A DNA stretch of 64,000 nucleotides. Origin: Klebsormidium nitens (taxonomy: Eukaryota; Plantae; Klebsormidiophyceae). Below the pieces are notes generated by a model. That model made no database searches, was not told the origin of the DNA, and saw nothing but the letters and a program-made list of their open reading frames with translations. The stretch covers positions 69,486 to 133,485 of the forward strand of contig DF237184.1 of assembly GCA_000708835.1 (NCBI GenBank), in the 5' to 3' direction. Of this stretch, positions 29,375 through 59,856 are shown piece by piece (the stretch's first letter is position 1; every line of letters starts with the position of its first letter). A program made the translations under genes and the position numbers.

Positions 29375-32300
29375 ATGGCAAATTGCTTTGCGTGCTTTGC
29401 TCGGTCTGATAAGGAGGAGGCTCCCGAGGACGATCGGAGTGCACCGGGGAGACAGCATGGAGCGCCGGCCCGTAAGGTGTTGCCAGGTGAGGCACTTGTG
29501 AACCTCAGGCAACGTGCGAGTCTCGTTCATGTAGCCATCAAAGAGCATGAGCCATGGATCTCAGAGCTTTTGCTTCCTGTTCTTGATTGATGAGGGGCTG
29601 GAGATCAATGTTTGCAAGCCTCTTGTGCGGTACTGGACAAGATACCCAGCTGATCAGATGCTGTACTTATATGATTTGGGCGGCATCCACTTTTCGGGTT
29701 GTTTGTAGCTAGCTAACAAGAGTGAGCTTGGGTGGTTGCTGCTCGGGCTTGTGATACAGCTGCTGCTTGTGGTTGGTGCTTAGGTGTCACCAATCTCAAT
29801 GTGGACATCACTCTTGTTTGCTGAACAACGGCGTCGTACTCTTCAATTTTGCATCATAGAAGCACAACTTTAGGTTTGCTTAAAGTGAATCGTTCCAGCA
29901 CCCAGCTCTAGGGTTTCTCAGCTCGACAATCGTGACACACCGAGAGCAACAAAAGAAGTTAGGTTCAATTTGCGTTGTCTTGATACAGCTTCCTATGAGG
30001 AAGGGATGTTATGCTGCCAGTGCCTTTCAGTGGTTGCAATAGATGGCCTTCAGCTGCTTGTTAGCAAGTTGAAAGCAATCTGGAAGCAATGCGGCAATGT
30101 CGCATCATTGGGAGTTGTGCTCCAAGTTCCTTTTTGAAGCTTTGAGCTCATTTGTGAGGTTTCTCAATCAATCTGACACCATTGAACCTGGACACTTTTT
30201 GATTGCTCCACTCCTGTTAAACAAGCCTTCAATGTTGGCCTTTATTGGCATCAAAAAGATTCCGGTTAAGCTGAAGCACAAGCCGCTTCCTTTATGCTCG
30301 TATTGTCGTTTGTGAATCTCCATAGTCTCAGAAGACCAGCATCAATGTCCGCATAGCCCCAAGCTTTATTTCCCACTGCATACGCGGTCTCCATATCTTT
30401 CTGTCGGTGTAAGCAGTGTACTTATGCTGGTCTGCTAGTGAGTAAGCATAAAACTGCAAAGCTTCTGTAAGATTGTCTCCCTTTTTCTGTTATCACAGGT
30501 ATATCTGTTGCCAATGTGTCCGATCTCTGCCCAATGTTCGTGGCTTAAATGTTCGTCAATGTTCATCAACATCTCTCCCAAAATGCTCGGCTCTCCATTC
30601 AGATCCTCAACACCGAAGATTTTCCCCGGTCTACAGTACACCACTGCACTAGTCATGTTTGCTTTTATCCTCCTCGACATTTTTGATTAAGTAGTTTCCA
30701 CCTTTTGTGCTCAATCTTTCTCCCCCTCATTCTCACTACTTGCTTTCCACAATGCAGAGCACGAGATGCTCGTCCCATCCAACGGCCCTATTATCGGCAC
30801 TCCCGCGCACCCCAACGCCCGCCTCGGCCGCCTCCCCTCCAAAGAGCCCGAGGAGCACTTTGCGTCCCACCCAGAAAAGTCGCCGGCGCAGATTTTCACC
30901 TTCCGGGAACTGCAAGCAGCCACTCGGGACTTCCGGCCTCAGAACCTGCTCGGGGAGGGCGGGTTTGGCAGGGTTTACAAGGGCCGGTTAGAGCGGACGG
31001 GGCAGATTGTGGCCGTGAAGCAGCTGGATAGGACGGGCCTGCAGGGCAATGCGGAGTTCCGAGTGGAGGTGTCGATGCTCAGTCTGCTGCACCATGAGAA
31101 CCTGGTGAACCTGATCGGATACTGTGCGGATGGGGATCAGCGGCTGCTGGTGTATGAGTTCATGCCGCTGGGGTGCCTGGAGGATCATCTGCATGGTGAG
31201 GCTTTGGAGCTTGAGGGTGTTCGGAAGCAGATTGCTGGGTCTCAGGGTTAAGAGTGAGCCTAATCTCAAGGCTTGAGCAACCTGGGCGTGGCGATAGGTG
31301 CTGATTGCCGACCAGGCGCTTGCCAATGATCCAGCATAAAGGGGCCTGTAATGTGTTCAAGCGTAAGGAGGGCGCTGCCAGACATGTTGGAGGACTTTGC
31401 ATTTTGATCGGCTACAATGTGGCTGTTGATCGGCGCTCCTCGGCTCTGTATTAGCTGGTTTGTTTTCTTCATTGCTCTCTAGAATAGGGGGTCCTGCAAG
31501 ATGGTGGTTCAGCTAGAGCCTGGACCGCGTGTCTGTATAGTAGCAGGGAGCCTTGCTTATGTCTACTACGAGGGTGTGGATTAGTGTCTTTCATTCTGGG
31601 CCAAGAGTCGCAGAACTTTTCTACTCTTTCTGCGGTGTTCAGCAAGGCAGCTCTGGAGGCAGCAATGTGCATGAGGTTTGTTCCAAACCTCAATTGGAAA
31701 CGTTCGATGTTTGCAGGTCTGCGTTCCTGTAAACTTTTGATACTTTGCCAACTGTCGCCTTCAATGGCCCATACGGGGTTTGAGTAGGGCCCATACGGAG
31801 TTTGAGTAGGCATTTGTGACTATCTCCAGCAGCACCTCAGTTGCTCAAGTTCACGTGGCTCGTGATATTGCGTCCTCAGTTGATAACCCTCGCAGTCAAT
31901 TAATGCTAGCCAAACCCTGATCTACACAACTCCCATCAAATGTACGTGTCCATGTTTTGGACACTTCTCTGAGCGCACAGTGGACCCCCTGTCACAGACC
32001 CTTGCTGCATCCTCAAACAGCTTTGGGTGTAGGGCTTTAGGCTAGTACTCCAAAAGATTGCGGTGTATCGACACCTCCTCCAAGGTGGACTCCGGCCCTT
32101 TTGTCCTCAAGAAGAAAGTCACGATTGGAGAGCCTCTGCGGGACCTATTCAGCCAGTGCTCCGTGGCATAGTTAGCCACTGCTCTGCGGACATAGTCAGC
32201 CAGTGCACATCTGGTGTCCTTTGAGACGATTCTAAGAAGATGTTCCATACATTCAGTTGAACCATCTGGCAATACAGATTAGACAACTTTGAAATCTCAC

Positions 32301-35061
32301 CTCTTTACCCCACTCCCCGCAGACGTCCCCCCCGAGCGCGAGCCCCTCGACTGGTACACCCGCATGCGAGTTGCGTATGGCGCCGCCAAGGGCCTCGAGT
32401 ACCTGCACGACAAGGCGGACCCCCCCGTCATTTACCGCGACTTCAAATCGTCCAACATTCTGCTCGATGTCGGGTTCCATCCGAAGCTCTCCGACTTCGG
32501 TCTCGCGAAGCTCGGGCCGACGGGGGACAAGACGCATGTGTCGACGAGGGTCATGGGAACATACGGTTACTGCGCGCCGGAGTATGCGATGACGGGGCAG
32601 CTGACGACCAAGAGTGACGTGTACAGCTTCGGCGTGGTGCTGCTGGAGCTGATCACGGGACGGCGCGCGATTGACAGCTCGCGGCCGCGGCAGAGCAACC
32701 TGGTGGCCTGGGTAAGTCTAGAGTGCAATAACAGGACTTGTGGGGTTTGAAGAGACATTTTGCACGGACTTCATGGGAACAGGATTCGAACATGGTCATG
32801 TCATTGATTGTTCTGTGAAAGCTGCTGTTGTTGACGCCCTCAGATCAACAACTGGAGTCGAAAGTTATTTTGCCACAAAAATGGCGTCAGTAGATAAAAT
32901 GGATCTGATCCTGCTTTGCAAGTACGTCGAGTGGCCGTCCAGGAATGGGACATGTATGTACATGCTTCCTTGAATTGTGCTGCTGATCACAGACGTTCTC
33001 CTTCAGCGGTTGCTTCTTGTTGAAGATCGGAAGGTTTAGCTGAGTTGGAGACAAGCCTCCTTTTTGCCAGAACATGGCTTTTGCAGGAGGTCAAAAGTTA
33101 CAATCTATGTGGTTGATTGAGTTTTTCTGGTGTAGTAGTCAGTTTCCTGAGAGCGTCCTCTGCTCTTGCAGGCGCGCCCCCTGTTCAAGGACCGGCGCAC
33201 ATTCCCAAGCATGGCAGACCCGTTGCTGCAGGGCCGCTACCCGATGCGAGCGCTCTACCAGGCTATGGCAGTAGCCGCCATGTGTCTGCAGGAAACCGCC
33301 ACCCTGCGGCCCCAGATCGGTGACGTGGTTATGGCCCTTAACCATCTCGCTAACCAACGCCAGGAGCCCGGGGAACCCGGACGACGGACCTCGCGGGAGA
33401 TCCCACGGGCTGGACCCCGGGGGATGACCACTCCGGAACGACGCGGGGGCGAGGAGAGAAATGGAGACAGGTTGAGGGGGGGGTACGAAAACGTGCGGCA
33501 AGCGGGGGGGCGGAGGCGAGAGGACGAGAACTGTGGGGGGAGGAACTGGGAGCGCGAGAAGGGCATCTACTTCCGGGGGGGTCAAGAGGGCCGGCAGGAG
33601 ACCCCCCGGCGGCGGGACGACGAGTTTGGGAATGGGGGCGAGCGGAGCGAGTCGAGCCACAGCCGGAAGCCGAGCGGCGACGGCAGCGAGTCGTACCGGT
33701 CTGAGGACACGTTTGAAGCGGAACGGGGGGGTGTGAAGGCCGCCGAGCAAGACCCCCTGGGAGACGGAGACAGCGCCCGGGCGAGCCCCCAAGTCGAGCG
33801 GTTCGTTCCCGCCCCCCTCCAGCAGGAGTACGCGTACCCCCCCAGCACGAGAGAGCACCCCGCGTTTGCGGGGACGGCGAAGAGCGCGATCCTGGAGCGG
33901 ATGTCGTCATGGGAGGCGCGGCGGGGGAGGGGGGGCCCGGCAGGGACGTTGAGGCACAGGGTGCTGGACCGCACTCAAGACAGGGAGGCGGCGGCGCGGC
34001 AGGCGCGAGTTGTGGAGATCCCGGAGAGAGGTGCGGGTGGGGAGGGGTCGATCGCTGCTGAGAGTCCGCGGGAAATGCCCCTGGGGTGGGACCTGCAGAG
34101 CGAGGCAACGACGCTGTCAGCGGAGGACCGGGGCCAGGCCGTCTTCGACCTCGAAGTGCCGGAGGCGTCGTTGCAGGAAACGTTTGGGGTTGCGGCGCCG
34201 GGCCGGATTGAGATGGGATACGGGTTTGGACAGGATGAGCCGGGGAGGGGGCCCGGCGCCGCGGCCGGGCAGCAAGACGCTTTTGGCAGCGTGGTGTACC
34301 CAGAGGTGCCAGACCGGGGGTACCACGACTTCGGTAGGCTAAGCATCGACGAGCGAGCAAGCGCTCTTGAGCCTCCGTTGGTGGGGGCAGGGGCCGCAAC
34401 AGAGTTGCCTCTCTCCAACGGCGGGGCCAACGCTTTCCCTTCGGAGACCGCTGCGGAACCCTTTGAGCCGGCTGTGGCGCAGCAAAAAGTGGCAGATTTG
34501 GGTGGGGGGGAGAAGGAGCCAACGGATCAAGCGGGCGGAAGCTCCGAAGCTCCGGCCGAGAAGCCCGTCGGGTTTCTGGCGATTCCCAGCTTCAAGGCCA
34601 GGCAGGAACAGGCGCTCGACGCTGCGGGGCGGGTCGCATTTCTCTGGCAGCAGCAGCAGCAGCAGTCGCCCCCGCCCGTGCGGCCAACTCCCGCAAACCC
34701 GTTCGACTTGTCCGAAGAAAGTCCGCAGCCCAGCAGGGCGCGGAGCCCAGTCACGGTCGAGAGTCCGCGAATCGTCCACATGGTCGAGAGTCCGCGAATC
34801 GTCCACATGGTCGAGAGTCCGCGAATCGTCCACACGGTCGAGAGTCCGCGAATCGTCCAGAGCGTCCGGAGTCGGCCGCGGACGCCAGAGCGGCTTATGC
34901 GGTTGGACATGCCCCGGGACTCTCTAGAACGCGTTGACTTCGTGGCGGAGCCGGGTGCAAGTGGGGAGCCGTCGAGGTTGGAAGAGTACGCATGGGCCCA
35001 GCCGCAGGATCCGAGCAATGGACGACGCCCGGGATCGTTTGGTGTCGGGGGAATGGGATAG
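29375..35061 (+). CDS. Receptor-like cytoplasmic kinase, RLCK-VII (PBS1/PBL27-like), with a low-complexity C-terminal extension of more than 500 aa (about 942 aa)
   Basis: Exons 29375-29486, 30758-31195, 32323-32711, 33172-35061. Motifs: [89 protein letters not shown]. Confidence 0.93.
34756..34857 (+). repeat. Coding 27-bp tandem repeat, about 3.8 units ([10 protein letters not shown])
   Basis: GTCGAGAGTCCGCGAATCGTCCACATG x2, ...CACACG, then a partial unit. The units are contiguous with no spacers. Confidence 0.95.
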
Positions 35062-43086: not shown

Positions 43087-46000
43087 ATGGCGGCAAAAGT
43101 GACCATCGATGCTAAGACAATTCAGAGCGTGACTTTGTACACCTGGTTACCATGGTTCCTCCGGTTGGACGTCTGGCCCTTTGTGTCTTTCTACCTCGCC
43201 TGGGCGGGTTTCCTTGTTCCCAGACTCGACAGGACCGGTAGTTTTGTCTGCCTGATGTTGATTATCGTCGTCCACATCCTGACTGAGCTGTTCACATACT
43301 GGTCCATCAACTTCAAGGCCCTCGCGCTTTGTGCAAGAGTGAAGGAGATCAGGAAGGCGGAGGTTGTCAAGGTGGTCCCAAAGAAGTTCAGCGGTCACAC
43401 GGAGATTGTTCCGTTGAAAAGGAAGCGGCTGGGGGGGTATGGCGGCGAAGAGGAGATCAGTTTCCAGTACAGGTAAATAGGAGGATGAGATTGGAACCGC
43501 AGACAATCAGCCAGTCCGCTCTGACTTGGGAACATTGTTTGTTGGCAGAGGTGGTCACTCACAGCAGCATTGATATGTTGGTGGTACTATGGCAGGATCC
43601 TGATTCATGTGCTTTGTTACCTTTCAATTGACCCATTGATTCTCAACTTTGCTCAAAGGATATACTGATTGCACTCAGATCTACGTTCCTTCTAGCCGGC
43701 TTTCCCTTTCAAAGTCGCCCTCGCCGCTGTGTTGTCCTTACAAGGTCACTTTCTGATTTCTACCACTGAAGTGATTCACATGAAGCAATTTCAATCAAGG
43801 CGCTGGGCAACCTGTCTCCTCACAAGCGCATCGGCCACGAACCGGCATACTTATATCATGATCCTGCCTCTCCTGCTGCAGGAAGCAGCGATTCATCTAC
43901 AGCCGTTCCGAGGCCATCTTCCGCAAGCTCGACTTCCCAACGAAGTGGATGTTCAAAGAGTACCTGAGGACGCAAGGCCACGAGACGGAAGCAAAAGCAA
44001 AGGCGGCGTTTGACAAATGGGGACGGAACGCCTTCGAGTTCCCGGCCCCCAATTTCCTGAGCCTATACAAGGAGCAGTGCATGGAGCCATTCTTTGTGTT
44101 CCAGGTATGACCTTGGGGGGTTCTGTGTTCCAGAATTCAATCACCTGAGCCCTTCCAGACGGTTTATTGCGTCGTCAAGCATTTGAAAAAGCCTGTTGTT
44201 GCATACTTTTCCCATAATCGCTCGGAGAGCACAAAAGGAGTCTGCACACTGCTATTATGTTGACAGCAGCAACCGCATGCTGGTGGCAGACATGATACAT
44301 CATCGTGATTGCAAAGAGCATGCCCTTACTGCAAGTTTATGCGTCGATTCTGGAGAACACTGTCCAAGAAAGCTCTGCCCCCAAGCAGTCAGTACTGATA
44401 GGTTACAACATGTGACCATGTCAGATCATCAAGTTGGAAGGGCAATTGTCGCCCCCGCAATTTAAGTTCACAACTCTCTGTGAGAGATCTGGAAAATAGA
44501 TGAGGATAGAGGAACTCTTTTTGAGATATACAAGTCACTGCGCAGGTGTTTTGTGTGGCGCTCTGGTGCATGGACGAGTACTGGTACTACAGCATCTTCA
44601 CGCTGTTCATGCTGCTCCTCTTTGAGGGCACCGTCGTCTCGAGCCGCCTGCGCACGCTGCAGGAGCTGCGCCGCGTTAGAGTCGACTCACAAGGCCTCAT
44701 GGTCTTCAGGTCAGTGCTTGGAGGCTGCGCTGTTGGCCACCTCTCGCTTTGATGAGAACACGTAAGTTAGGTCCTGCGTTGCTGGTGTCAATCTATGATT
44801 TTAGGGCCTTCTTTTCAAGTTTTAGGTCAGTCCTCCGAGGTTGCTGTGCTGGCCACCTTCCAGGTTGATCGGAACTTCGCATTGTTGATTCCTTGCCTCG
44901 TTAAAAACTGTTCACAATCCCTTGGGTCCTTCTTGTTGGTTCTACCCTCGGCACATCGTGGCTTACATAGAGATTACAGTCGGTATCGAGGCAGTGGGGC
45001 CTCGTTGGTGACTCAGGCGAGTTCGTCACCTTGGTTCTCGGCGTCTTTCCCATGCTGGTCGGCGGCTTTCCATCCGACCTTTACGCCTCTATGTAGGTTG
45101 CAAACCATTACGCACTTGTGTAAGTCGCAAACCGCATTTGTAGTGTACCAAGCTGATTACTCTTCTTCTCCTGCACCCCCCTTCAACCACCCCCTCCTGT
45201 ATTGACACCGACACACGTGCAGGGCGCACCGATGGATCCGTCTCCAGGGCGACCAGCTCGTCCCTGGCGACTTGGTGTCAATCGGCCGCCCCACAGGCCC
45301 GGGCGCCGAGGAGCGCACCGTTCCCGGGGACCTTCTACTTCTGGCCGGCACGGCGATCGCGAACGAGGCGCTGCTGACCGGCGAAAGCACACCCCAGTGG
45401 AAGACGCCGATTCTCGACGAGGATCCGAAACAGCAGCTGAGCATACGGAGAGATAAAGTGCATGTGCTGTTCGGCGGAACGAAGGTTTTGCAGCACACGG
45501 GTGACAAGTCGGCACCCGTGCGGACGCCGGACGGGGGGTGCCTCGCAGTAGTGCTGCGGACGGGGTTCGACACGAGCCAGGGGAAGCTCATGCGGACCAT
45601 CCTGTTCTCGCAGGTAGGGGCCGAGAAACTTTTGTTGGATTCTCGAAGAGAAAAACTTGGTGGCTTCTTCTTGAAGGAGAGAGTTGCGAAGCTGTTCACA
45701 CCGAGGCATTGACCTTTATCTTTGCCCAATTAGTCTGCAGATTTGAACGTGATCTGCCATTCCTGATGATGGCGGAATCTTGTCAATGGGACATTGTCCT
45801 GAATTGACTAAGGATTGTGTTGACGGGTGCAACTACAAGTAGTAAAACAGAGTGAACGATGTGTTGACGGATGCTCTTGTGAAGACAATTTCATGAGCGA
45901 AACTCTTCACCTACCTACCATTCCCGTCTTTCACCCGCAACTGTGTTTCCCTTTCACTCCAGGAGCGCGTGTCGGCCAACAACTGGGAGAGCGGCCTCTT

Positions 46001-49000
46001 CATCCTCTTCCTCGTCTTCTTCGCGCTCGCGGCCGCGTACTACGTCCTCATCAAGGGCCTCGAAGACCCCAACCGCAGCCGCTACAAGCTGCTCCTCAAC
46101 TGCTCGCTCATCATTACGTCAGTCATCCCCCCGGAACTCCCGATGGAGCTCAGCATCGCGGTGAACACGTCGCTCATCGCGCTCGCGCGCCGCGGGATCT
46201 TCTGCACGGAGCCGTTCCGGATTCCGTTCGGCGGAAAGGTCGACGTGTGCTGCTTCGACAAGACGGGGACGCTTACCAGCGATGATATGGAGTTTCTGGG
46301 CGTGACGGGGCTGGACGGGAAGCAGGAAACCGGGGAGGCGAATGGAGGGCCCGGGGGCAGGTGAGAAGACGTGTCGATGATCTGGTGGTTTCGTAAGGCT
46401 GACTTCAAAGGTTGCTGGATTCGTCTAGCGGAAGTTTTGATTTGGTATAGGAGCGGATCCGTCTGCGACGGCCTGCCACTTCCGCTCTCTATCCATGCTG
46501 CACCCGATGTATTTCGGATACGGTCCTCGAACTTGGTCGGCCTCGATTCAGCTGCTAGTGTGCCTTTTGGTTGCCCGACTGTCCCGTCGTAGGCTATCAG
46601 CCTCCAAGCTGGGATGGGAAACGTCGAAGGAGCGGGCAAAGTTGCAAATCCCTTTGCACTTGGACTCACTTGTTCCTTCTTTCGAAGCATGGCGCAGTGC
46701 CCTGACGTTCATTCAAGATCCGATACCTCTCTTCGAACCGCTCTTCGCCACGTCCCCTCAATTCCTCTCCTGACAGCTTGCCTGTCCCCTGCAGCTGCTC
46801 CGAGGAGCTTATTTCCGACCCGGCGACCCTCCCCGAGCTGTCCGTCTTCACCCTTGCCGCGTGCCACTCGCTCGTCTTCGTCGACGGGAAGCAGGTGAGG
46901 GTAGTCTCTAGATTATTGTGGTAAGCCCAGGTCTGCATGGAAAACCTGCCCGAGAGGGGTAATTTGAAGGTTTAGGTCGGGTATGGGTGCAGAGCACGTA
47001 AACGTTGCTTTGGGTTTGTATTTGCATTGCTAGTTCTATTTCCCATGATTAGTCCGTCTACTCATTGTGAGTATCATCACAACACGTATGGTACTCAGTA
47101 GAAGCAAGAAGCTCATACTAAGTGTGAATTGATGCAGGTGGGGGATCCCCTTGAGCAAGCAGCGCTGAAGGGCGTCGGTTGGAGCTACACGCAGGACGAG
47201 CGCGCGCTGGCCAAGACTGGGAAGGGCCCGCAGCGGGGCGCGCAGATTGTACACCGGTTCCATTTTGCGAGCCACCTAAAGCGCATGTCGGTGCTCGCGA
47301 AGCTGCTGGAGGTGCCGCGGGAGCTGGCCGAGGGCTACTTTGTGCTGGTCAAGGTGAGGGCGGATAAAGGCATGCTGATGATCGGAGGGGGGGTGGGGGG
47401 CATTCCGCGTTGTTTGATGCGAGGTGGTATGCCGAGGGCTTCTTCTGCTCGTCGAAACGCGGAAGGATTGTCATTGTGCTGGGCAAGGTGACGGGGCAAA
47501 GATGGAGGGTTTCGCTTTGATCGATGCGGGACTTTAGGACCGAAGCCTACTTTGAGCTGGTAAACTCGTAGGCGGACCGGGCCAACATTCGCCAATCTGA
47601 TGTTATCGGTTTCGTCACAATATGCGATCAGAACCTACGATCTCCCCCTGTTCGCTGTCAGGAGTAAAGCATTGGTACCTTCCCGAATCAGTGGGCTATG
47701 TTCGGTCACTGCGGATTATTCCGTATGCTCTTGTTCGTCAAAAGAATGGCGGACCAGCCTACTCGGTTCTTCTCCCCGGAAAAGACGTGTTTTTGGTAAC
47801 AAAATGGTCGAGTGCCTTCTTCTCCTCCAATCAATTCGCAGCATCCTGCTCACAATCCAAAGAAAATGTGTCCTAACCCTCTTTCCAAACCGTCTTGCAG
47901 GGCGCCCCCGAGACCATCCAGGAACGCCTGGCCCACGTGCCCGCCGGCTACGAGGCCGCGTACAAGCGCTTCACGCGGCAGGGCTCGCGCGTTCTGACGC
48001 TCGCGTACAAGCACCTCCCCGACATGCCCGTCGGCGACCTCCGCTCGCTCGAGCGCGACGCCGCAGAATCTGACCTCACGTTCGCAGGGTTCGCTGTCTT
48101 CGCGTGCCCGCTGCGGAACGATTCCGCAGATGCGCTGTTGAGCCTGAAGAACTCGAGCCACGAGCTGGTGATGATCACGGGGGATCAAGCGCTCACGGCG
48201 TGCCACGTGGCAGCCCAGGTGCACATCGTAGACCGGCCGGTGCTGATCCTGACGGAGCGGAAGACGGGGGGTTGGGAGTGGTTGTCGCCGGATGAGGCGA
48301 CTGCGGTGGAGTACGAGAAGGAAGGCGTGGAGGAGATTGCGTGCGAGTATGACCTCTGTGTGGCGGGCAAGGGGATCGAGATGCTGCAGCAAACAGGTGA
48401 GAATAGAGGGAAACCCTTACATAAGAGTCGTAAAGAATTGGAAGCTTTGCTCAGCACCCTTTCACCCTTTCAGTACCCCTTCACCCCACATGTTGTTCGG
48501 GAGCCGCAATGCGATGTTAGTGCCCGATTTCATTGCAGTCATTCAATTTTGCATCAAACCAGGGTCTTTCAAGATCCTCGTTGACTCTTCAACCGTTTCT
48601 TATACTGTTATTGCAGGACTTGATCGCAGCAACAGAGGCTATTCGTCGCATTGACCTGTCGGAATATTGCCAGGTTGCAGTTGGATTCCTTGTATCAGAA
48701 CTCTGGATGACTTAAACGGCAGTTCAACACCTGCGCACGTTTTCCCCTTCAGGCGCCCTCCCGAGCGTCATTCCCCGGACCCAGGTCTTCGCCCGGGTCG
48801 CCCCCGAGCAAAAGGAGCTTATTCTCACCACGCTCAAGGAGTCCGGGCGCACCGCGCTGATGTGCGGGGACGGCACAAACGACGTGGGTGCGCTGAAACA
48901 GGCCCACGTGGGGGTGGCGCTCTTGAATGCGCCGATGCCAAAGAAGAAGGAGAAGAAAGAGGAGCCGGCGAGAACGGAGAGTGGGGCGTTGGCGGGGCCG

Positions 49001-52000
49001 TCGGAAGGGCCAGAGAAGAAGAGCCGAAAGAAAGAGATTGTGCCGGTGGGTCTGGGATGAGAAGACATTGCAAAGGGTCAACCCGGCTTGATTGGATCGT
49101 TACTGCTTGACATTGATTTGAACAGCTGAAGAGGCGCAGTGCGGATGCAGCATTTCGTGGCCGCACACACTTTCATAGCTCGCATTTTGTGATTCCCAGA
49201 TCATCATTTCAGAGATCAAGTTGCGCAAGCATTGCGTTCCGTGGAGAGTGGCTTCGCTCGAAATTTTGCTTAATCAAAGAGGGTCAGACATTTCTCGGGA
49301 AAGCCAAACCAAAAAGTTCCTCCGTATAACAGCCTTATTGTGAGTTCTTCTGTGAACGTTGGCTTTCCTTGGACTTGCGTTTTGGGAGCCCCGGAGGTTC
49401 AAGTCGTGAGGATGCCAAGTCAAAAGGATCTCCGTGCAGCGACCAACCAAGTTCCATTCCGCTTGCAGTCGACCGGTCCCGACGCCCCCGGCAAGGAACT
49501 TACCCCGAGCGCCGCCCGCCTCAAGGCCCGGCAAGAGAAGTCGAAAAGCGGCAGCAGAATCTACAAGAGCAGATTTCGAATTGCTAAGGAGTTCCTGCTT
49601 TCTCGGCATGACATCTCAACCAGATTCCTCCCCGGTGCAGTCAACCGTTCCCGACGCCCTCGGCAAGGAACTCACCCCGAGCGCCGCGCGGCTCAAGGCC
49701 CGGGAAGAGAAGCTCGCAAAGCAGCAGCAGCATCTACAAGAATTGTTAAAGATCCCGTACTTTTTCTCGGCATGACATCTCAACCAAAGTTTTTCCCGGT
49801 GCAGTCAACCGGTCCCGACGGCCGCGGCAAGGAGCTCTCCCCGAGCGCCGCCCGGCTCAAGGCCCGCCAAGACAAACTTGCAAAGCAGCAGCAGCATCTA
49901 CAGGAGCAGCTGGCGAAGCTGAAAGAGGAAGGGGAGCCCAATATGGTGCGCCTGGGGGACGCGTCCATGGCGGCCGCGTTCACGGCCAAGCACGCGAGCG
50001 TCATGCCCACGACCGACATCATCCGGCAGGGGCGATGCACGCTTGTCACCACGCTGCAGGTGCACGGACGGCTAGTGTTTCTATTTATCTGGTTTGATTT
50101 ATACGTTCTGCATGTGATGTTCGCTCGACGTGGTTCTTGTGACGTGGGTTCTTGTGCTCTGTCCGTCCGCGGAGAGAGACTGGAGAGAATGGACGAAGAT
50201 TGGATTCAAAGAGAAAGTGGACGTATTTTCACATACACGGATCCGGGAAGCGCCTTGCGAGATTTGAAGAATTTTGGCACACGTAAGCTGCCGTCAGCTT
50301 TCTTTCAAATTCTATCCAGGTTGGTTCTGGGCCGCAAGTGTTTTGCTACACGTTGAGAAGATTTCTGCTTGTCCAAGGTTTCACTCTCGCTCGGAGGGGG
50401 GACCAGTCCCGAGAATGGTTCTTTCGCACTCGTTTCAAACCCAAGATGTCAAAATTTGATCCCCAAATTCATAGAATTCGAACTCTTCGTGCGCAGATGT
50501 TCAAGATCCTGGGCCTCAACTGCCTGGCAACGGCTTACGTGCTGAGCGTGATGTACCTGGACGGCGTGAAGCTGGGCGACGTGCAGGCGACGATCGGGGG
50601 CATGTTCACCGCGGCCTTCTTCATGTTCCTCTCCAACGCCAAGCCCCTCGAGACGCTCTCGCGCGAGCGGCCGCACCCCAACATCTTCTCGCTGTGAGTT
50701 TCTTCTTCTCCTGTAATAGATCTCGCTTTGCTTTTTTCCTCTTACGGTATCGAGCGTGAAGAAGGTGCTTTCACAAGTGTTAGAACAAGTCTTACCTGCG
50801 CGGTTTGGGGGCACCGCCTCTTTCCGGTAGGAGCGTTGCCTATTTTCGGTTTCCTCTCCAAACCCCTCCGCATGCCTTTGACAGAGCGCCCACACCCCAA
50901 CATCTTCTTACTGTGAGGACCTCCCCTGTGCCCAATTTAGGACGTCTTGGGTCGCGTGCTTTGAACAAGGCATTCTTGTGCCTGCAGGGACGCCAATGCT
51001 ACAGAATCGTTCTGAGAAGTTTTGCTTTTTTCCTTCCCTTTCCCATTTGCGTGTGCTGACGCCGCTCGATCTTGCGTTCCTCTAGGGACGCCATTCTGTC
51101 GTTGCTGGGCATCACGTTCAGTCTCTGTCTTCATTCATGCACTGTGTGCTGACGTGAATTTTTCTCTATGCTGACGTCACTGGACATCGTTTTACCTCCA
51201 GGTACGTCATCCTGTCGTTGCTGGGCCAGTTCGCCATCCACATCACGTTCCTGATCACGGCCGTGCGCGGCGCGGCCGCCTACATGCCGGAGCAGTGCAT
51301 CGAGCCGGACTCTAGCTTCAGCCCCAACCTAGTTAACACCGTCTCCTACATGGTCAACATGATGATCCAGGTACTGCCCATATGGACGTCATTATTCTCT
51401 GGCCGTAAGGCCGGCATGTTGGTCTGTGTCATCATACCCTGTCTCTGACGTCAGGATGGCCGTTGACTTCAGCCTCCCTAGTTTTTCGCGCCAGCATTTT
51501 AAGCCTGACGTCAGCATACGCGGTCCCTGGTGTCAGCTTGACATGGAACACCAGCTCGGATCTGGTCAGCGAAACGGTCAGGTCGTACCACCAGAGACTG
51601 ACCCTTTGCTGTCAGCTCAAATGTCGGGCCTCTGAACTAGGCGGCCGATCGTTCCTTGACAGTCGGTCACAAACCATTCGGTTTGAAAGCTTTGCTGTTG
51701 GGCCGCGTCTACTTTGCAAATTCTCTTGCGAACTATTTCCAATCTGTCTGTTCCGCCCTGTGGTTGGTTGAGGTCTCAACGTTTCTCTTACGCTAGAACC
51801 ATTTTCTTTTACCACCCTGGTTTGGAAACCTGGTTGGGTCGGTTGGGATATTGAATGAATGGCTGATGTTGACGTCACTCTTTTTCAATTCCAGGTGGCA
51901 ACTTTTGCGGTGAACTACGTGGGCCACCCGTTCAACGCGAGCATCACCGAGAACAAGCCCTTCTACTACGCGCTCCTTTCGGCCGGCGTCTTCTTCTGGG

Positions 52001-52677
52001 TGGTGAGCGCGTTTGCCTTTGCTGGAGCGACGCTGGCTTGTGACTTGCGATGTCGCTTGGAGATTGAGGTGTCACCAGGGATGTTGAACGAGATCAAAAT
52101 GGACACAACGTTTAGTAAGGGCGGTTCGAGAATCGTTCGAGACCAGCGAGTAATGTCAAAAAACCTTGCTGGTGGTCGTTCTTGGCAGAAATAGCCGCCA
52201 CTTATCTGTGGCGGAGTGCTCAGTGATAGAAAGTACCTAAGGTTACGTGGTCTTGGCAGGCCGGGATGGTCCCTGGCAGCTCGTCCGTGAGGGTCTTTAC
52301 GACTCCTTCGTGACATGGGTTTAGTATGGTACCGATAACCAACTTTGTTGACTCTCGAGCTTCTTCATTGCTCGGGTATCCCTCCACCCGGCAGCGGTCC
52401 GGACAAACTCTCTGTTTGTCTTATCCTTGATCGTTCTCTATTCGCGTTGCAGCTCACGTCGGACACCATTCGGCCCCTGAACGACTACATGGAGCTCGTG
52501 CCCTTGCCCCGGGACTTCGGCAACACGCTGCTCCTCATGTCCGCCTTGGACTTTGCGCTCGCCTATTTTTTGGAGAGGGTGCTTCGCAAGCTGCTCCCAG
52601 CAAAGATACCGAGCAGCCACAAGGGTCAGTCAAGTAAAGCGGATAAAAACCTGCTCGAAGCGAAGAAAGTCAATTAG
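43087..52677 (+). CDS. PDR2: P5A-type ATPase (PDR2/MIA, Spf1/ATP13A1 orthologue; about 1206 aa)
   Basis: 14 exons: 43087-43472, 43882-44104, 44546-44709, 45223-45613, 45963-46360, 46795-46894, 47138-47353, 47901-48396, 48753-49045, 49805-50059, 50497-50693, 51202-51370, 51895-52002, 52453-52677. Motifs: [18 protein letters not shown] (P5A TM4), [39 protein letters not shown]. Confidence 0.95.
49440..49804 (+). repeat. Two degenerate copies of the P5A exon-10 acceptor plus about 100 bp of exon, inside intron 9
   Basis: CAG|TCGACCGGTCCCGACGCCCCCGGCAAGGAA (starts 49469) and CAG|TCAACCGTTCCCGACGCCCTCGGCAAGGAA (49641) versus the true CAG|TCAACCGGTCCCGACGGCCGCGGCAAGGAG (49805); spacing 172/164 bp. 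Confidence 0.9.
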
Positions 52678-53732: not shown

Positions 53733-55407
53733 ATGGCTTCTTCATCTGGGATGGCCGCCCCTTCGTCGAGCCAGAGTGCAGAGCGGAAAGCGACGCCATC
53801 TGGCATTGAGACTCGAGAGGAGTTGTCTGGCTCTGAGAAGCTGCAGAAGGTAGGGTTTCTGCACCTGAAGACGAGGGTTTTGATCTGCAAGATGGAGCCG
53901 CTTGTCCTCTTGAGATAAAAATGATGGTCCAGGGGGGTCCTTTCTTGCAGGTAGTCTGTTTGAGATTGATGTTCTACTTTCACAAGTGCACACTCGCTTG
54001 CTTATCTCATTATGGTCTACAGCGTCTTGATGTTGACTGAATGACTCTCAAAAGACGCAGGGTTGCATGTTCTCACCGTGTTCCTTGCGTCAAGCTGGCA
54101 TTGTACGTTTTACAGTACATACGGTCTTTCATTGCATACAGTGATTCTTGCCGGCTGCTTTGCCAGGTTGTTGCTTAGGCCAGGGTTGTCTTCCATCAGC
54201 ATGTGTGCACATGTAGACTATCGTCATGAAACGTATGAGGAAAAGTGGTAAAAGGCTGATAGGCTTCAGTAGTTCGTCTTGTGCCTAAAACCCTGTTTTC
54301 CGCAGCACGTACCATACCCTGAGATGAAATTGCATCAGATTATGTTGCTTGGATTGGTTACTTCGTATGGGCAGCCTGTCTACAGTCACGTCTGGCATAA
54401 GGCTAATCTGCTAATTGGGAGAAGGGGCTGCCAACTCATCCGGCGAATTGCTGTCAGTGTACCATCTCGGCAGCGGAAGGTTCTTCTTGGTGACGTGTCC
54501 AGTCGTGGACACAAGTAATGACCAAGTGGCGTTTAAGTCGGGACTCCCACCACTTTGTTGATCTTTCGATCGTGTCTTTTTTCTGCCTTTTGGAGTTGTT
54601 GAGTGGCTGAAAGTATCAAGCACACCACAAATTCCTGTTGCAGGCCAGCATCTTCTTGTCGGATAAGAGGTCCGAGTACTTGAGAGAGTTGAAGGCACTG
54701 GTTGCGGATCCTGGGAATCGTGACTCGGACGAGAAGGTTACGGTAGGTCACTTGTCGATGGAGGCACGATCAAGCAGAAGCTGCTGCTTGAGGAACGCGC
54801 AGTGTTGTTCGAGGGACGTTCTGGATCTCGGGGGGGTAGGTTCTGTCTATTTTTTGTCTTGCCAGACGAATAAAGAAGGGAGCTTGTCTGTCCACTGTTT
54901 TTACGGGAAGGAGCGGCACTTGCTTTTCTAAGACTATTTGGAGAATAAAACTTGATTCTCCATGTTCATGTGCAGCACTTCTACAGGCTGATTGAGGAGC
55001 TGGCGTGGGTGGACCAGGATCAGGCATTTGACATCTACATGCAGTGGTGTCTGCAGAATCCAAATATCCGTCAGCAGAAGCTTGTGAGCGCCTCCTAAAC
55101 TCGACGCTTCTGTGCACCTACTGGTATAGTCTCACTCCTCGGATAGCATCATATGCTGAAGACTGCCAAGCTTTAATGCCTATGATTGTGCTTGGTCTGC
55201 TGCCGCTTGATCGCTCTGGCGCTTGGAGGCTAGTCCCGTAGCACTTTACGCAATCCCCTTCTTCTCATTTCGTCTTGGCTAGGTCATATTTACGCCATGT
55301 AACGCTTTTTTGATCAGCCGCCTGTGGAGAAACTCAAGCACAACTTCGGCGAGGTGGCGGAACGTGTGCGGAGAAGGAACCAACCGCTTGAGTGGTCTGA
55401 GCGAATG
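53733..55407 (+). CDS. Candidate orphan multi-exon gene of unknown family; 3' end unresolved
   Basis: Four stop-free phase-0 GT-AG exons with lengths divisible by 3: 53733-53849 (MASSSGMAAPSS...EKLQK), 54644-54736/54742 (ASIFLSDKRSEYLRELKALVADP...), 54976-55083 (HFYRLIEELAWVDQDQAFDIYMQWCLQNP...), 55318-55407 (PPVEKLKHNFGEVAERVRRRNQPLEWSERM). Confidence 0.55.
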
Positions 55408-55513: not shown

Positions 55514-55596
55514 GTTTACTGTGGGTGCATTTAACCTGAACATCTCTTGACACGGTTTACTGTGGGCGCATGTAACCTGAACATCTCTTGACACGG
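55514..55596. repeat. Tandem duplication, about 42 bp
   Basis: GTTTACTGTGGGTGCATTTAACCTGAACATCTCTTGACACG followed by GTTTACTGTGGGCGCATGTAACCTGAACATCTCTTGACACG. Confidence 0.9.
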
Positions 55597-56680
55597 TAAT
55601 GAAAGCAAGCTGCCAAGGTTTCCTGGAGCAACTTCCTGAAATGCATTCGTTTGCGGATATGCTTGCAGTTTGCCCTGACACCCAAGTCAGTACTCTTCCC
55701 CGGGTGCTGCTAGCTGTCTGGGCTCATCACACATCATCGTATGTCACGGGACTGAGGGACGTTAGATTGCAGCCTATTAGCAGAGCATTACTCGTCTCTT
55801 ATCTCCTTTATTCGTTTATAAATTCTGAATGCGAAAAACACTCAACTGTTCTTTCCATTTGTGCGGTAGTTGGACGTTATGGTCTGGCTCTCAGGGGTTT
55901 CAAGGGAGGAGTCAATAAGAGTTTCCCTGTGGAAGACAGGACTCGTCTTGTCTTCCTCGTTCGCTTCAAATGGATTTTCACGAGCTACGTGTACATTTGG
56001 GTAGATCACCTGTTACCGATGAGGGTCCCTCTAAGCACCTTGTACAGCAATTGCGCAAGCAACCACTCCTCTAATGTATGTCGGTGAATAGCTGATGTTT
56101 AGAGTTCGAGTGTTTTCCGGAAACTTGCAAACGGTGGCAATCAGTCTTTGCAAAATCAGGGCTCCATGTTTTGATCCGTAGACTGTATGAGTTTACTTTT
56201 GCAGCTTACTGAGCTATGTATTCTGTCATATCGCAACGAAGTAGATGATCACCACGCAGCAGCCCAGTCCTCGTCTTTTACTACAACCCAACAAATGAAG
56301 CAGTTATTGACTTGCAAAAACCATCGTAGTCGGAGTTTGATGAGGTTCTGCAAGTTGTTTCAAGCCCACATGGCAGTCTCTAGCCAAGTGACTCAAAAAC
56401 GCGCCAGGTGCGCCAAGTGACTTAGAGACACGGATCCTCAAGTTGTCGAGTATAACTAAGAAGACTCCTTCTCTTAGCTTGAATACTTTTCTCATCATGT
56501 TGACGTCGGTCATCTCATGAGCTGTTGGATACATCCCGCTGCATGCTCACGCGTGATTAGTCGAAGTGGTACGATTTCCTGACGCCACTGGCGTATTGCA
56601 TATGACCTATAGCCTCAGAATGGCCTTCTGGGCTGATCTTATACTGATTGTATACTGATTCTGGGCCTGAATTGTTTAAG

Positions 56681-59297
56681 ATCCTGGGCCTGAATTGCCT
56701 TGCGACGGCGTACGTGCTGAGCGTGATGTACCTGGACGGCGTGAAGCTGGGCGACGTGCAGGCGACGATCGGGGGCATGTTCACCGCGGCCTTCTTCATG
56801 TTCCTCTCCAACGCCAAGCCCCTCGAGACGCTCTCCCGCGAGCGGCCGCACCCCAACATCTTCTCGCTGTGAGCTTTTCCTTCTCCTGTACAGACTGTCG
56901 CTACGCTTTTTCCCTCTCTCGATGCCGAGCAGTGAAGAAGGGTGCTTTCGCACGTGGTACAAAAGTTTTCTGCGAGGCTTTAGGAGCATTTTTATTTCCG
57001 TTTTCCTCTCCAATGTTCAGCCCCTCGAGATGCTCTCGCACTGGCGGCCACACCCCAACATCTTTTCGCTGTGAGGGCCTCCCCATTTCGGCTTGCTGTT
57101 TGTCGTCTTGGTTCGTGCCCTTTGAACAAGGCATTCTTGCACCTGCGGGATTGTCAAGGCCATCTTCGCTCTCAGAAGCTTCGTTTTCTCCCTTCCCTTC
57201 CCTATTTGCGTGTGCCGGCTCCGCTTGATATGGCATACCTCCAGGAACGTCGCCCTGACGTTGCTAGGCCAGTTCGCCATCTACAGCACGTTCCGTCTTC
57301 GTCTGCTCTATGCATCGCATGCTGACAAACTCGATGCTTTGTTTGCTGACCTTGCTCCAATACTTCGTGCCTCCAGGCACGTCATCCTGTCGTTGCTAGG
57401 CCAGTTCACCATACACATCACGTTCAGTCTCTTGTCTTTTCTCATGCACTGTGTGCTGACGTCACGTCTTCTGTGTGCTGACGTCACGTGCTTCCGTGTA
57501 CCTCCAGGTACGTCATCCTGTCGTTGCTGGGCCAGTTCGCCATCCACATCACGTTCCTGATCACGGCCGTGCGCGGCGCGACCGCCTACATGCCGGAGCA
57601 GTGCATCGAGCCGGACTCGAGCTTCCACCCCAACCTAGTTAACACCGTCTCGTACATGGTCAACATGATGATCCAGGTACGTTGTCGACTTCAACATGCT
57701 CTGTCCCTGACGTCATCATGCCTTGTGTCATACTATTATATGTCTTGACGCCAGGATCATCGCCTGACGTCAGCACATGTTGAGTTTGCCACCAAGATAT
57801 TACACTTGACACCAGCATGCCTGTCAGCATACTGACGTCAGCGAGCCTCCTCCTGACCTCAGCTTGAGCTTGACCACCATACGTCATCTGGTCGGCATAG
57901 TGTTTGCTGTAGGGCGTGGCGCCACCGATTGACTTTTTGTCATCGATTTGAAGTGCCGGCTCTTTGACGAGGCGTTCATATTATCGTTGGAGGCATTTCG
58001 AAGCATTCGAGGTTCATGAATCATCAGGATAGCTTCGCTGCGCTAGCTTAATCTTGTGCGGAGCCGATCTTATGAGTTGCGTAGCACCTTTTGTTGCACA
58101 TGACTCTTCCTGCAACTCCTCTTTCCCGCTTGCCCTGTGCTTATCTACTCTCTGAACATCTAGTTGCTCATGAATCGCGGGTTCGAACCTGGCTAGGACT
58201 TTCAGCGGCTCGCTGATGTTGACATCATTTTCCCGCTGCCAGGTGGCAACTTTTGCGGTGAACTACGTGGGCCACCCGTTCAACGCGAGCATAACTGAGA
58301 ACAAGCCCTTCTACTACGCGCTCCTCTCAGCTGGCGTCTTCTTCTGGGTGGTGAGCCCGTCTTCTTTTTGCTGATGCGATGCTGGTTTCAGTAGAAAAGC
58401 AGATTTGGACTACCACTCCGTTGAAGCTGAACCCATTTCGCGTGGAACGACAGTTCGGTAGAGAGTATAATTTCCCGCAGGACAGCGGAGCTACCAGTCA
58501 AACCAGGCACTCACAAGCTTAAGAGGTGCTTGGAGTGTCGAAAATTGTGCAGGAATGTAAGAGGAGCGGAACACGAGAACACCACCCGCTCCACTACACA
58601 ATCTTAGAGGTTCGCGACCAGTAAACGGGGACCGTCCGCTGTTAAATTTGACTTTGTGTTCGTCCTTTTTGGAGAAGCGCTGCGGCCACAATAATTTGCA
58701 GATTGCTTCGCTACTGGTCGCACGAATCTGCAATTTGTGGCCTTGGCAGACGCTATCGTCCCTGAGCTCTGTTATAAGGTCATGATCGTTCAGATTGTCG
58801 AAGCATTTGATCGTTGTTTTTCTGCTCATTGTGTCCATTTCGTTTACCTCTAGTCCACAAGGTTTTCTGGCACCAAGTTCTCGTCTCGAAGTCGGCCTCG
58901 ATGTTTGATATTCTCCGATGTTAATCGTTTTGAAGTTGCGCTTCCTGTCTCACCCCTCACAGGGTTTCTGGAATCTGAACAAGTTACTCAACGTTCTTAT
59001 ACTCAATGCGGCTTGTTGGCGTAACAGCTCACGTCGGACACCATTCGGCCCCTGAACGACTACATGGAGCTCGTGCCCTTGCCCCGAGATTTCGGCAACA
59101 AGCTGCTGCTCATGTCCGCCTTGGACTTTGCGCTCGCCTATTGTTTGGAGAGGGTGCTTCGCAAGCTGCTCCCGGCCAAGATACCAAATAGTTACAAGGG
59201 CCAGTCAAGTAAAGCGGATAGACATTTGCTCGAGGCGAAGAAAATGAATCAGCAAGGACCATTTATGTACGGAGAGCCGGGCCTGACGAACAGCTAA
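56681..59297 (+). CDS. Partial duplicate of P5A ATPase exons 11-14 (TM5-TM10 and tail), intact frame, C-terminus extended by 15 aa
   Basis: Exons 56681(?)-56868, 57508-57676, 58243-58350, 59028-59297 match 50506-50693, 51202-51370, 51895-52002, 52453-52677. All internal GT/AG sites are kept. The original CAG|ATG acceptor is missing; the only candidate is AAG at 56678-80. TAG has become CAG, giving the tail [15 protein letters not shown]. The duplication itself is certain; expression is not. Confidence 0.75.
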
Positions 59298-59856
59298 TTC
59301 AATCCTGTCGATTTTGGCTCACTAGTTATGCAGTCACCATTGTATCACCAAATATCAAGTTTGTGCGTCCGACAAAGTCATTGGTTATTGCGAGATGTCG
59401 ACGCTCTAACGGTCTTGTGATTGAGCATGCATGCATGGAAGGCAATTTTGGCAACTTAGGTGTTGCTTGACAACGGTGATTGGAGCGTGATACATAGTAA
59501 TCACTCGGGGCTCCTTGTCTGCAACACGTATTACAGTTAAGAGGTACAACCGACTCGGTCTTTTGATTATGCATAAGTTTGGGCACCGCGTCCTTAGCTA
59601 GAACCGTCCTTACTTGCTTAACTGTACCAAGATTGAAATTTGAAACCCCTAGCTAGGCGCCAATCACCATTGTATCTTAGATCTAAAGGTTGACATGGAT
59701 TCGCAAGCAACATAAATATGCACTTCGACCACTTCTACTGCCCTTTTATTTCAACTACCAACGGTAAAAGCGAAGATTGCGGTTTATTCAAATGACAAGC
59801 ATTGGGAAACGTGGTCTTTAGTTGTCGTTGCAGCGCCTGTAGAGTCCCCAACGTCT

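Follow-up and report, generated by a model that had tools for sequence, protein, structure and literature searches.

A constrained downstream duplicate of the TM5-TM10 exons of a P5A-type ATPase gene in Klebsormidium nitens

P5A ATPases, among them yeast Spf1, human ATP13A1 and Arabidopsis PDR2/MIA, are dislocases that act on transmembrane helices in the endoplasmic reticulum, and the least understood part of these pumps is the block of transmembrane helices 5 to 10 (TM5-TM10). Here we describe, in a 64,000-nucleotide stretch of the Klebsormidium nitens genome (contig DF237184.1, positions 69,486 to 133,485; hereafter the window, in whose own numbering all positions are given), a P5A-type ATPase gene whose exons 11-14 recur downstream of it. 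The downstream copy corresponds to TM5-TM10 plus the tail of the known pumps. It differs from them in that neither the copy nor the annotated protein that includes it, GAQ85446.1, has the N-terminal hairpin, TM1-4, the A, N and P domains or the phosphorylation motif, and because these parts are missing the copy alone cannot pump; as annotated in GAQ85446.1, its TM5-TM10 share no polypeptide with catalytic domains. Two further differences are the loss of an invariant Met-Phe-Lys (MFK) sequence if the copy is entered at position 56681, and a 15-residue read-through tail.

The pump gene and its duplicated exons

The parent gene lies on the forward strand at 43087..52677 and belongs to the Spf1/ATP13A1/PDR2 family. 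Its GenBank model of 1206 residues ends at the stop codon of the in-gene exon 14 (52677) and bears PF23143, E1-E2_ATPase and Cation_ATPase. The N-terminal exon (43087-43473) matches PF23143 (2TM_P5A-ATPase, E=3e-18), so that the P5A-specific two-helix hairpin is present, and exon 11 aligns over its full length with the human ATP13A1 and yeast Spf1 chains.

A repeat search found exons 11-14 of this gene, which encode TM5-TM10 and the tail, a second time downstream in the same orientation at an offset of 6.2-6.6 kb, in agreement with the first-pass annotation of this DNA, which had placed the repeat about 6.2 kb away. We refer to the in-gene exons as copy A (50497-50693, 51202-51370, 51895-52002 and 52453-52677, forward strand, with AG/GT borders and an open frame) and to the downstream duplicate as copy B (56672-56868, 57508-57676, 58243-58350 and 59028-59297, likewise on the forward strand). 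Exon 11 of copy B, taken from its candidate acceptor (56681..56868), encodes TM5-TM6 and the L6/7 loop, and its differences from copy A are nearly all silent. Exon 12 (57508..57676) encodes TM7, the lumenal L7/8 loop and TM8; exon 13 (58243..58350) encodes the L8/9 loop and TM9, with five changes relative to copy A, all of them silent; and exon 14 (59028..59297) encodes the L9/10 loop, TM10 and the tail. In single-exon phmmer searches exon 11 of copy A matched ATP13A1 with E=2.5e-19, and the copy B peptide is identical to that of copy A from residue 2 onward.

Exons 11, 12, 13 and 14 are 95.9, 97.0, 95.4 and 90.6% identical between the two copies, compared with ~83% for intron 11 and ~80% over the alignable part of intron 12, where similarity falls to random by mid-intron. 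Intron 13 (450 vs 677 nucleotides (nt)) and both flanks give no A-B alignment, and the strong intron divergence reported earlier, including these two lengths, is therefore real. Codon by codon, the copies differ by 24 synonymous and 10 replacement changes plus a stop codon converted to Gln; a previous manual count of 23 and 9 is corrected accordingly, and its placement of five replacements in the post-TM10 tail stands. Three of the remaining five fall in the core; the end of TM10 and codon 1 have one each. The reference frame of copy B contains no frameshift and no internal stop, as the first-pass annotation had stated, and AG/GT is kept at all three internal introns. Conversion of the ancestral stop to CAG opens 15 codons of the former 3' untranslated region, the origin of the 15-residue tail extension already noted at first pass.

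Four-way alignment shows that the 5' homology of copy B begins at the first base of exon 11 (56672/3), with no intron-10 homology upstream; the breakpoint of the duplicated segment (56655..56680, forward strand) includes a 15-nt micro-repeat of exon 11 immediately upstream of the homology start. At the other end, copy B aligns past the old stop for ~45 nt with the 3' untranslated region of an orthologue, L001, and homology ends there. Against the same orthologue the copy B peptide is identical over exons 12-13 and 98% identical in exon 11. The event is shown to have been a partial duplication at the DNA level, which took in the P5A ATPase gene from exon 11, starting with its first base, to ~45 nt beyond the stop codon. 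Copy B now lies 4 kb downstream of the gene, on the far side of a small same-strand orphan gene.

It is extremely improbable that haplotypes or paralogues were merely joined in tandem during assembly, and we reject such an artefact. Independent Logan contigs from the DNA run X1 cross the 5' breakpoint (56303-56740, 0 differences) at a normal depth of 24, cover all of 53.7-59.7 kb and run from each copy B exon into its own introns. A- and B-type letters occur at similar, single-copy depth, the sites in exon 12 that tell the copies apart giving ~19-20 for either type (19.2/39.2 at 57619). Moreover, a distinct gene sits between the copies, and the vegetative alga is haploid, which counts against a mixture of haplotypes. 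The genome thus holds two single-copy blocks, with the proviso that X1 is possibly the same sample as the assembly, so that its support is not fully independent.

Selection and polarity in the two copies

Outgroups were obtained by an exon-14 protein search, which yielded L001, a Logan contig whose silent-site divergence (dS) from each of the two copies is ~0.3, and L002, a contig from a JGI metagenome with a dS of ~0.7-0.9. By the Nei-Gojobori method (NG86), copies A and B are separated by a dS of 0.182 and a replacement-site divergence (dN) of 0.022, giving a dN/dS ratio (omega) of 0.12. When the differences are polarised with L001 and L002, the B branch carries 15 silent and 8 replacement changes and the A branch 11 and 5, one A-branch change having been re-scored by hand. 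The eight B-branch replacements are five in the tail, M1L, Y197C and the stop>Gln change. Set against a neutral expectation of 3.2:1, the 15:8 split on the B branch has a binomial p=2.5e-5.

A branch codon model (GY94-F3x4, own implementation, tree ((A,B),L001,L002), four sequences, 232 codons) gave an omega_B of 0.062 against a background of 0.024. The hypothesis omega_B=1 is rejected (twice the log-likelihood difference 23.9, p=1e-6), and omega_B is not separable from the background (p=0.11). Restricted to codons 4-205, the membrane core, the model gives an omega_B of 0.012, with p=4e-4 against 1. The profile-likelihood 95% interval for omega_B spans ~0.02-0.15 overall and reaches at most 0.09 in the core; by this interval at most about 10-15% of the B branch was neutral. 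Both copies are under purifying selection, with an omega_B of 0.06 and an omega_A estimated at 0.09-0.11, the formal rejection of omega=1 applying to copy B. Seven intronic echo copies of exon edges, in the P5A gene and in L001, served as a neutral control. Between the echoes and their parent exons there are 25 silent and 32 replacement changes, close to the share of 63% replacement that a neutral lineage paired with a constrained one should show, and the contrast with the 26:12 of the A-B pair is significant (Fisher p=0.02).

These results confirm that copy B is under purifying selection and is not a neutrally decaying fragment, and the constraint that the first-pass annotation had read from codon counts holds under formal dN/dS analysis. 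Neither of the marks of an unprocessed pseudogene, disabling mutations or neutral evolution, was found in the reference, whose frame is intact and for which omega_B=1 is rejected. A third, B-like functional paralogue was considered as the source of the silent bias and rejected: the X1 DNA contigs contain A and B letters only, with no third B-like copy among them, so the bias was not inherited from another functional paralogue. Since only translation distinguishes codon positions in this way, the pattern makes a strong case that copy B was translated in the past, and it is probably translated at present.

The echoes are a feature of the locus in their own right. Introns 10 and 11 contain decayed copies of the adjacent exon edge, including its splice site, in copy A, in copy B and in L001 (7366-7442 and 7550-7626, from the 5' edge of exon 11). 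The repeat search placed those in intron 11 of copy B at 57003-57075, 57212-57293 and 57344-57425 on the forward strand, with counterparts in copy A at 50845-50917 and 51007-51110, and the echoes common to both copies predate the block duplication. In both copies, introns 11 and 12 also contain the palindrome TGACGTCA and near-copies of it many times over (51150-51520 and 57460-57850).

The orthologues also show which copy has changed. The first-pass annotation had listed A>T, S>H and T>K as novelties of the downstream copy, and an alignment with L001 and L002, the comparison it had suggested, reverses that polarity: both orthologues carry T91, H106 and K183, copy B keeps all three (T91 and H106 in exon 12, K183 in exon 14), and copy A is derived, with A91, S106 and T183. 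Distant plants, too, mostly carry H106 and K183. The listed F>C difference at position 197 is correct in that copy B has C, but the ancestral residue is Y, which both copies have left (F in copy A, C in copy B). Within the core, copy A has an omega_A of 0.11 compared with 0.0075 for the background (p=6e-4), a ~15-fold relaxation, and copy B stays at background. On this alignment, then, the in-gene copy A is the derived and faster-evolving one and the displaced copy B is ancestral at three core sites. This asymmetry, with the displaced copy conserved and the in-gene copy accelerated at lumenal loop residues, is unexpected.

Placed on the standard P-type topology, residues 91 and 106 would fall in the lumenal L7/8 loop, residue 183 would mark the lumenal end of TM10, and residue 197 would lie at the cytosolic end of the same helix. 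All these sites would be outside the substrate cleft, and the two modules would hardly differ within the membrane. In yeast Spf1 the lumenal parts of TMD7-TMD10 form a dock for EMC7/EMC10 (PMC13672079). Any link between this dock and the lumenal-loop differences of copies A and B is speculation. Judged by the orthologues, it is exactly at those lumenal loops that the pump's own copy has drifted (T91A, H106S and K183T). A free-standing half-protein, made of TM5-TM10 on an orphan N-terminus and with these loops in their ancestral form, might modulate the pump's partners or compete for them, or the pump might be made with two interchangeable membrane halves; we think either outcome rather unlikely.

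By silent-site divergence the duplication postdates the separation from the closest relative available (dS 0.18 vs 0.30-0.34), and site patterns favour grouping A with B (8 sites, vs 5 and 3 for the other groupings). The divergence is mosaic. Over nt 40-300 of the joined coding sequence (50536-50693 + 51202-51304 in copy A, 56711-56868 + 57508-57610 in copy B), A and B differ at only 2 positions and each differs from L001 at 14; outside this interval A-B divergence equals or exceeds that between A and L001. The pattern suggests short, exon-confined homogenisation, although the intervening intron 11 is only ~83% identical. Such homogenisation raises the possibility that copy B is an untranslated conversion partner or reservoir, kept A-like by exon-limited gene conversion and with a low dN/dS only as a by-product. 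The near identity over nt 40-300, the mosaic as a whole and the much greater likeness of the exons than of introns 12 and 13 are what such a process would leave. We nevertheless regard it as very improbable, for conversion removes silent and replacement differences alike and cannot account for the predominance of silent changes among those found in B alone (15:8 overall, ~8:1 in the core), the divergent intron 11 lies between the homogenised exon parts, and indirect selection acting through conversion would be very weak.

In the relatives, blastn and tblastx found no second block and no orphan gene downstream of the P5A gene in 5.6 kb of L001 and 10 kb of L002, and the exon-14 protein search returned only the orthologues' single exon 14. 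Of two metagenome scans, the first gave no matches and the second gave 37 distant plant loci, mostly cDNA-like and none with a second block, which were used as deep outgroups only.

Transcripts, splice entry and possible expression of copy B

The gene between the copies is an orphan on the forward strand with exons at 53733-53849, 54644-54742, 54976-55083, 55318-55407 and 55669-55713, the last ending in the stop codon. Joined, these exons form an open frame whose sole stop is the terminal one, and the 152-residue product ends in …FPGCC. In the K. nitens RNA-like run X5 a contig with a depth of 2.3 over this gene joins 55083>55318 across GT..AG borders and has a loose end that matches 55669-55685. 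Run X11, from a related organism (organism C), contains the joint 55406/7>55668/9 at a depth of ~650, with a loose end matching 55054-55083 with three mismatches. The depth over orphan exons 55318-55407 and 55668-55697 is ~650-1000 in X11 and only ~2 in the K. nitens runs. The orphan product has no Pfam match and no homologue of 59-187 residues among 5.8 billion proteins, the ESM Atlas offers only generic helical look-alikes of its N-terminus (TM-score below 0.5), and Pfam searches with single exons gave no matches. The spacer between the copies shows no homology to pump exons 1-10. Intron 4 of the orphan gene contains two tandem 41-nt units that are 95% identical (55514-55595).

GenBank joins this gene to copy B. 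The model GAQ85446.1 (352 residues, 'protein with P-type ATPase domain') consists of 53733-53849, 54644-54742 and 54976-55083 followed by the four copy B exons from 56681, that is, 107 orphan residues and TM5-TM10, and has no Pfam match. The nuclear gene models of K. nitens were predicted with Augustus (PMC4052687), and GAQ85446.1 is therefore a prediction and not transcript evidence. No paper in the literature mentions the accession, and partial sequences were excluded from a P5A survey that included Klebsormidium (PMC7065118).

The open frame upstream of copy B exon 11 is closed by a stop at 56645-47 and contains a single AG, so that 56681 is the only in-frame entry. This AG derives from the former codons 1-3, which read TTG TTT AAG in copy B. 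The acceptor is thus AAG (AAG|ATC), compared with CAG at 11 of 11 other local acceptors inspected, and the ancestral CAG acceptor is gone. Entry at 56681 removes MFK at the P-domain/TM5 junction, a sequence that human ATP13A1 and every sampled plant have without variation, and a pattern search for a mini-exon that could supply it found nothing meaningful. The joins 50059>56681, 50693>57508, 51370>58243 and 52002>59028, named at first pass, are all in frame in the sequence. A route from a donor-like GT at 55686 to 56681 is, on our own reading, out of frame and meets an immediate stop, and it was rejected. A promoter and terminator scan of 55.6-56.8 kb returned nothing, being a bacterial scan that is not applicable to a eukaryote.

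Transcript evidence at this locus consists of assembled contigs, and assemblers collapse variants that resemble single-nucleotide polymorphisms into the commoner path. The contigs contain no junction from the exon 10-13 donors into copy B, for which they are a weak test, and the two RNA-like runs contain no copy B contig over exons 11-13, again weak evidence because variants collapse in assembly. The only copy B stretch recovered from an RNA-like run is 59125..59333 (no strand assigned), a 208-nt X5 contig with B-specific letters, a depth of 5.2, 0 other letters and 1 gap. X5 contains RNA, since it also has a spliced contig, and the depth of the copy B tail is similar to the 2.3 of the orphan gene in the same run. 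The gap is one T missing from the TTT run at 59144, which is TTT in the DNA contig; its loss would shift the frame just after TM10 and might reflect variation between strains, an error at low depth or slippage in the transcript. We estimate that the word shares of 0.07-0.09 in the RNA runs are explained by the orphan gene, by 31-mers shared between A and B and, in X5, by the copy B tail.

Tentatively, and with something less than even confidence, we favour translation of copy B as the 3' part of a separate or chimeric transcription unit over its use as a cassette of the pump. A phase-0 donor of the orphan gene, either 55083 as in GAQ85446.1 or 55407, would be joined to exon 11 of copy B at the AAG acceptor (56681). 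Both donors are in frame with this acceptor and belong to an expressed gene of the same strand. Such a transcript would encode a short helical N-terminus of orphan origin, located in the cytosol, and then TM5-TM10 and the remodelled tail, but no catalytic domains; the product might act as a free-standing support domain that competes for, or supplies, contacts normally made by this part of the pump. We prefer this chimeric arrangement because an intron of 1.3-1.6 kb would suffice, the phase-0 donors belong to a same-strand gene that is expressed, and MFK is not required. A number of observations weigh against it. No contig contains any junction into 56681, and the contigs from K. nitens and organism C carry the orphan gene through 55083>55318>55407>55669 to its own stop; GAQ85446.1 is an Augustus prediction. 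The AAG at 56681 stands apart from the uniform local CAG, the missing T of the X5 tail contig would shift the frame after TM10, the ancestral stop no longer exists and the tail has five of the eight replacements on the B branch. Tight, pump-like constraint is also not obviously expected for a half-protein, although the interval is wide.

The first-pass annotation had proposed instead a mutually exclusive 3' cassette, in which exon 10 (donor 50059) or a donor of the copy A exons splices past the orphan gene into copy B and gives a pump with ancestral-type loops and a longer tail. All four joins are in frame for this, the constraint on copy B is indistinguishable from that on intact orthologous pumps (p=0.11; 0.012 vs 0.013 in the core), and the ~15-fold core relaxation of copy A after duplication is what would be expected if B shared the pump's job. 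We now consider a cassette unlikely. It would call for a 6.6-kb intron spanning four strong exons, the 3' end of copy A and a whole separate, expressed gene, and the introns inspected at this locus measure ~230-900 nt; its first exon has lost the ancestral acceptor and has no competent acceptor that preserves the register, entry at 56681 through the weak AAG deleting the invariant MFK; no pump-exon>B junction occurs in the assembled contigs, weak test as these are; and swapping the later exons only would leave the equally strong constraint on copy B exon 11 unexplained. A different reading of the same defects is that copy B was translated for most of its history and was recently silenced, so that it is now a dead or dying unprocessed partial pseudogene still picked up by gene predictors. 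Loss of the ancestral acceptor, the first codon and the stop, the cluster of replacements in the tail, the 1-nt deletion at 59144 in one RNA contig and the missing exon 11-13 contigs in the two RNA-like runs all fit a relic, and by our own reading 11 of the 15 silent changes on the B branch run from G/C to A/T, a hint of lost codon bias that does not differ significantly from copy A. This history is also improbable, if less so: the neutral part of the B branch is small, no disabling change is present in the reference, the absent contigs say little given how assemblers treat such variants, and even a relic must once have been expressed in the same architecture, given that no remnant of exons 1-10 is present in the spacer. 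Improbable to a greater degree is an independent half-gene that dispenses with the orphan exons, with transcription from a site of its own upstream of 56672 and translation from an internal ATG, of which codon 19 (56726) is the first in frame. An exon 11 without a good acceptor would suit a first exon, the copy B tail is present in an RNA contig and the constraint is mainly downstream of codon 19, codons 1-18 having too few B-branch changes to judge; yet the product would begin in the middle of TM5, and a promoter and transcript start are putative only.

Neighbouring features and comparison with known systems

Upstream of the pump gene lie a PBS1-like receptor-like cytoplasmic kinase gene (30766-33300) and then a long G+C-rich region of low-complexity open reading frame (33-35 kb). 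Within the pump gene, just upstream of exon 10, three tandem units of ~165 nt (49427-49905) would read in frame as a repeated peptide (…QSTGPD…); this repeat is common to the relative L001, which has staggered matches there. Many angiosperm annotations contain stand-alone 'PDR2/ATP13A1 C-terminal' proteins of 150-400 residues, most of them probably fragmentary models.

If copy B is translated, it would be a natural experiment on the P5A TM5-TM10 support domain, either apart from the catalytic machinery or swapped within it, and a dated, clean case of gene birth through duplication of an exon block, in an alga closely related to land plants. If it is untranslated today, it is an ordinary partial duplicate that is already annotated, and GAQ85446.1 is a doubtful chimeric model.

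Chimeric new genes can arise when partial duplicates recruit unrelated 5' exons, as in the jingwei type of origin. The present locus resembles that type in that a partial copy adjoins unrelated, phase-compatible exons and the copied part is under purifying selection, and GAQ85446.1 has the same structure. It differs in that the upstream orphan gene has terminal exons and a stop of its own, the fusion here is modelled and its junction does not occur in the contigs, and the copied part is a membrane half-domain and not a whole enzyme. With tandem mutually exclusive or alternative 3' exon cassettes it shares a block in the same orientation, constraint on both copies and frame-compatible joins, but the block is not part of the annotated gene and is separated from it by another, the ancestral acceptor of its first exon is gone, and a junction with the shared exons does not occur in the contigs. 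Finally, copy B recalls the intronic exon-edge echoes of Klebsormidium, which occur in the same gene, in that its 5' breakpoint falls exactly at an exon edge and bears a 15-nt micro-echo. The echoes are 50-100 nt long, intronic and about neutral, whereas copy B comprises 2.6 kb and four complete exons, has intact splice sites and is constrained.

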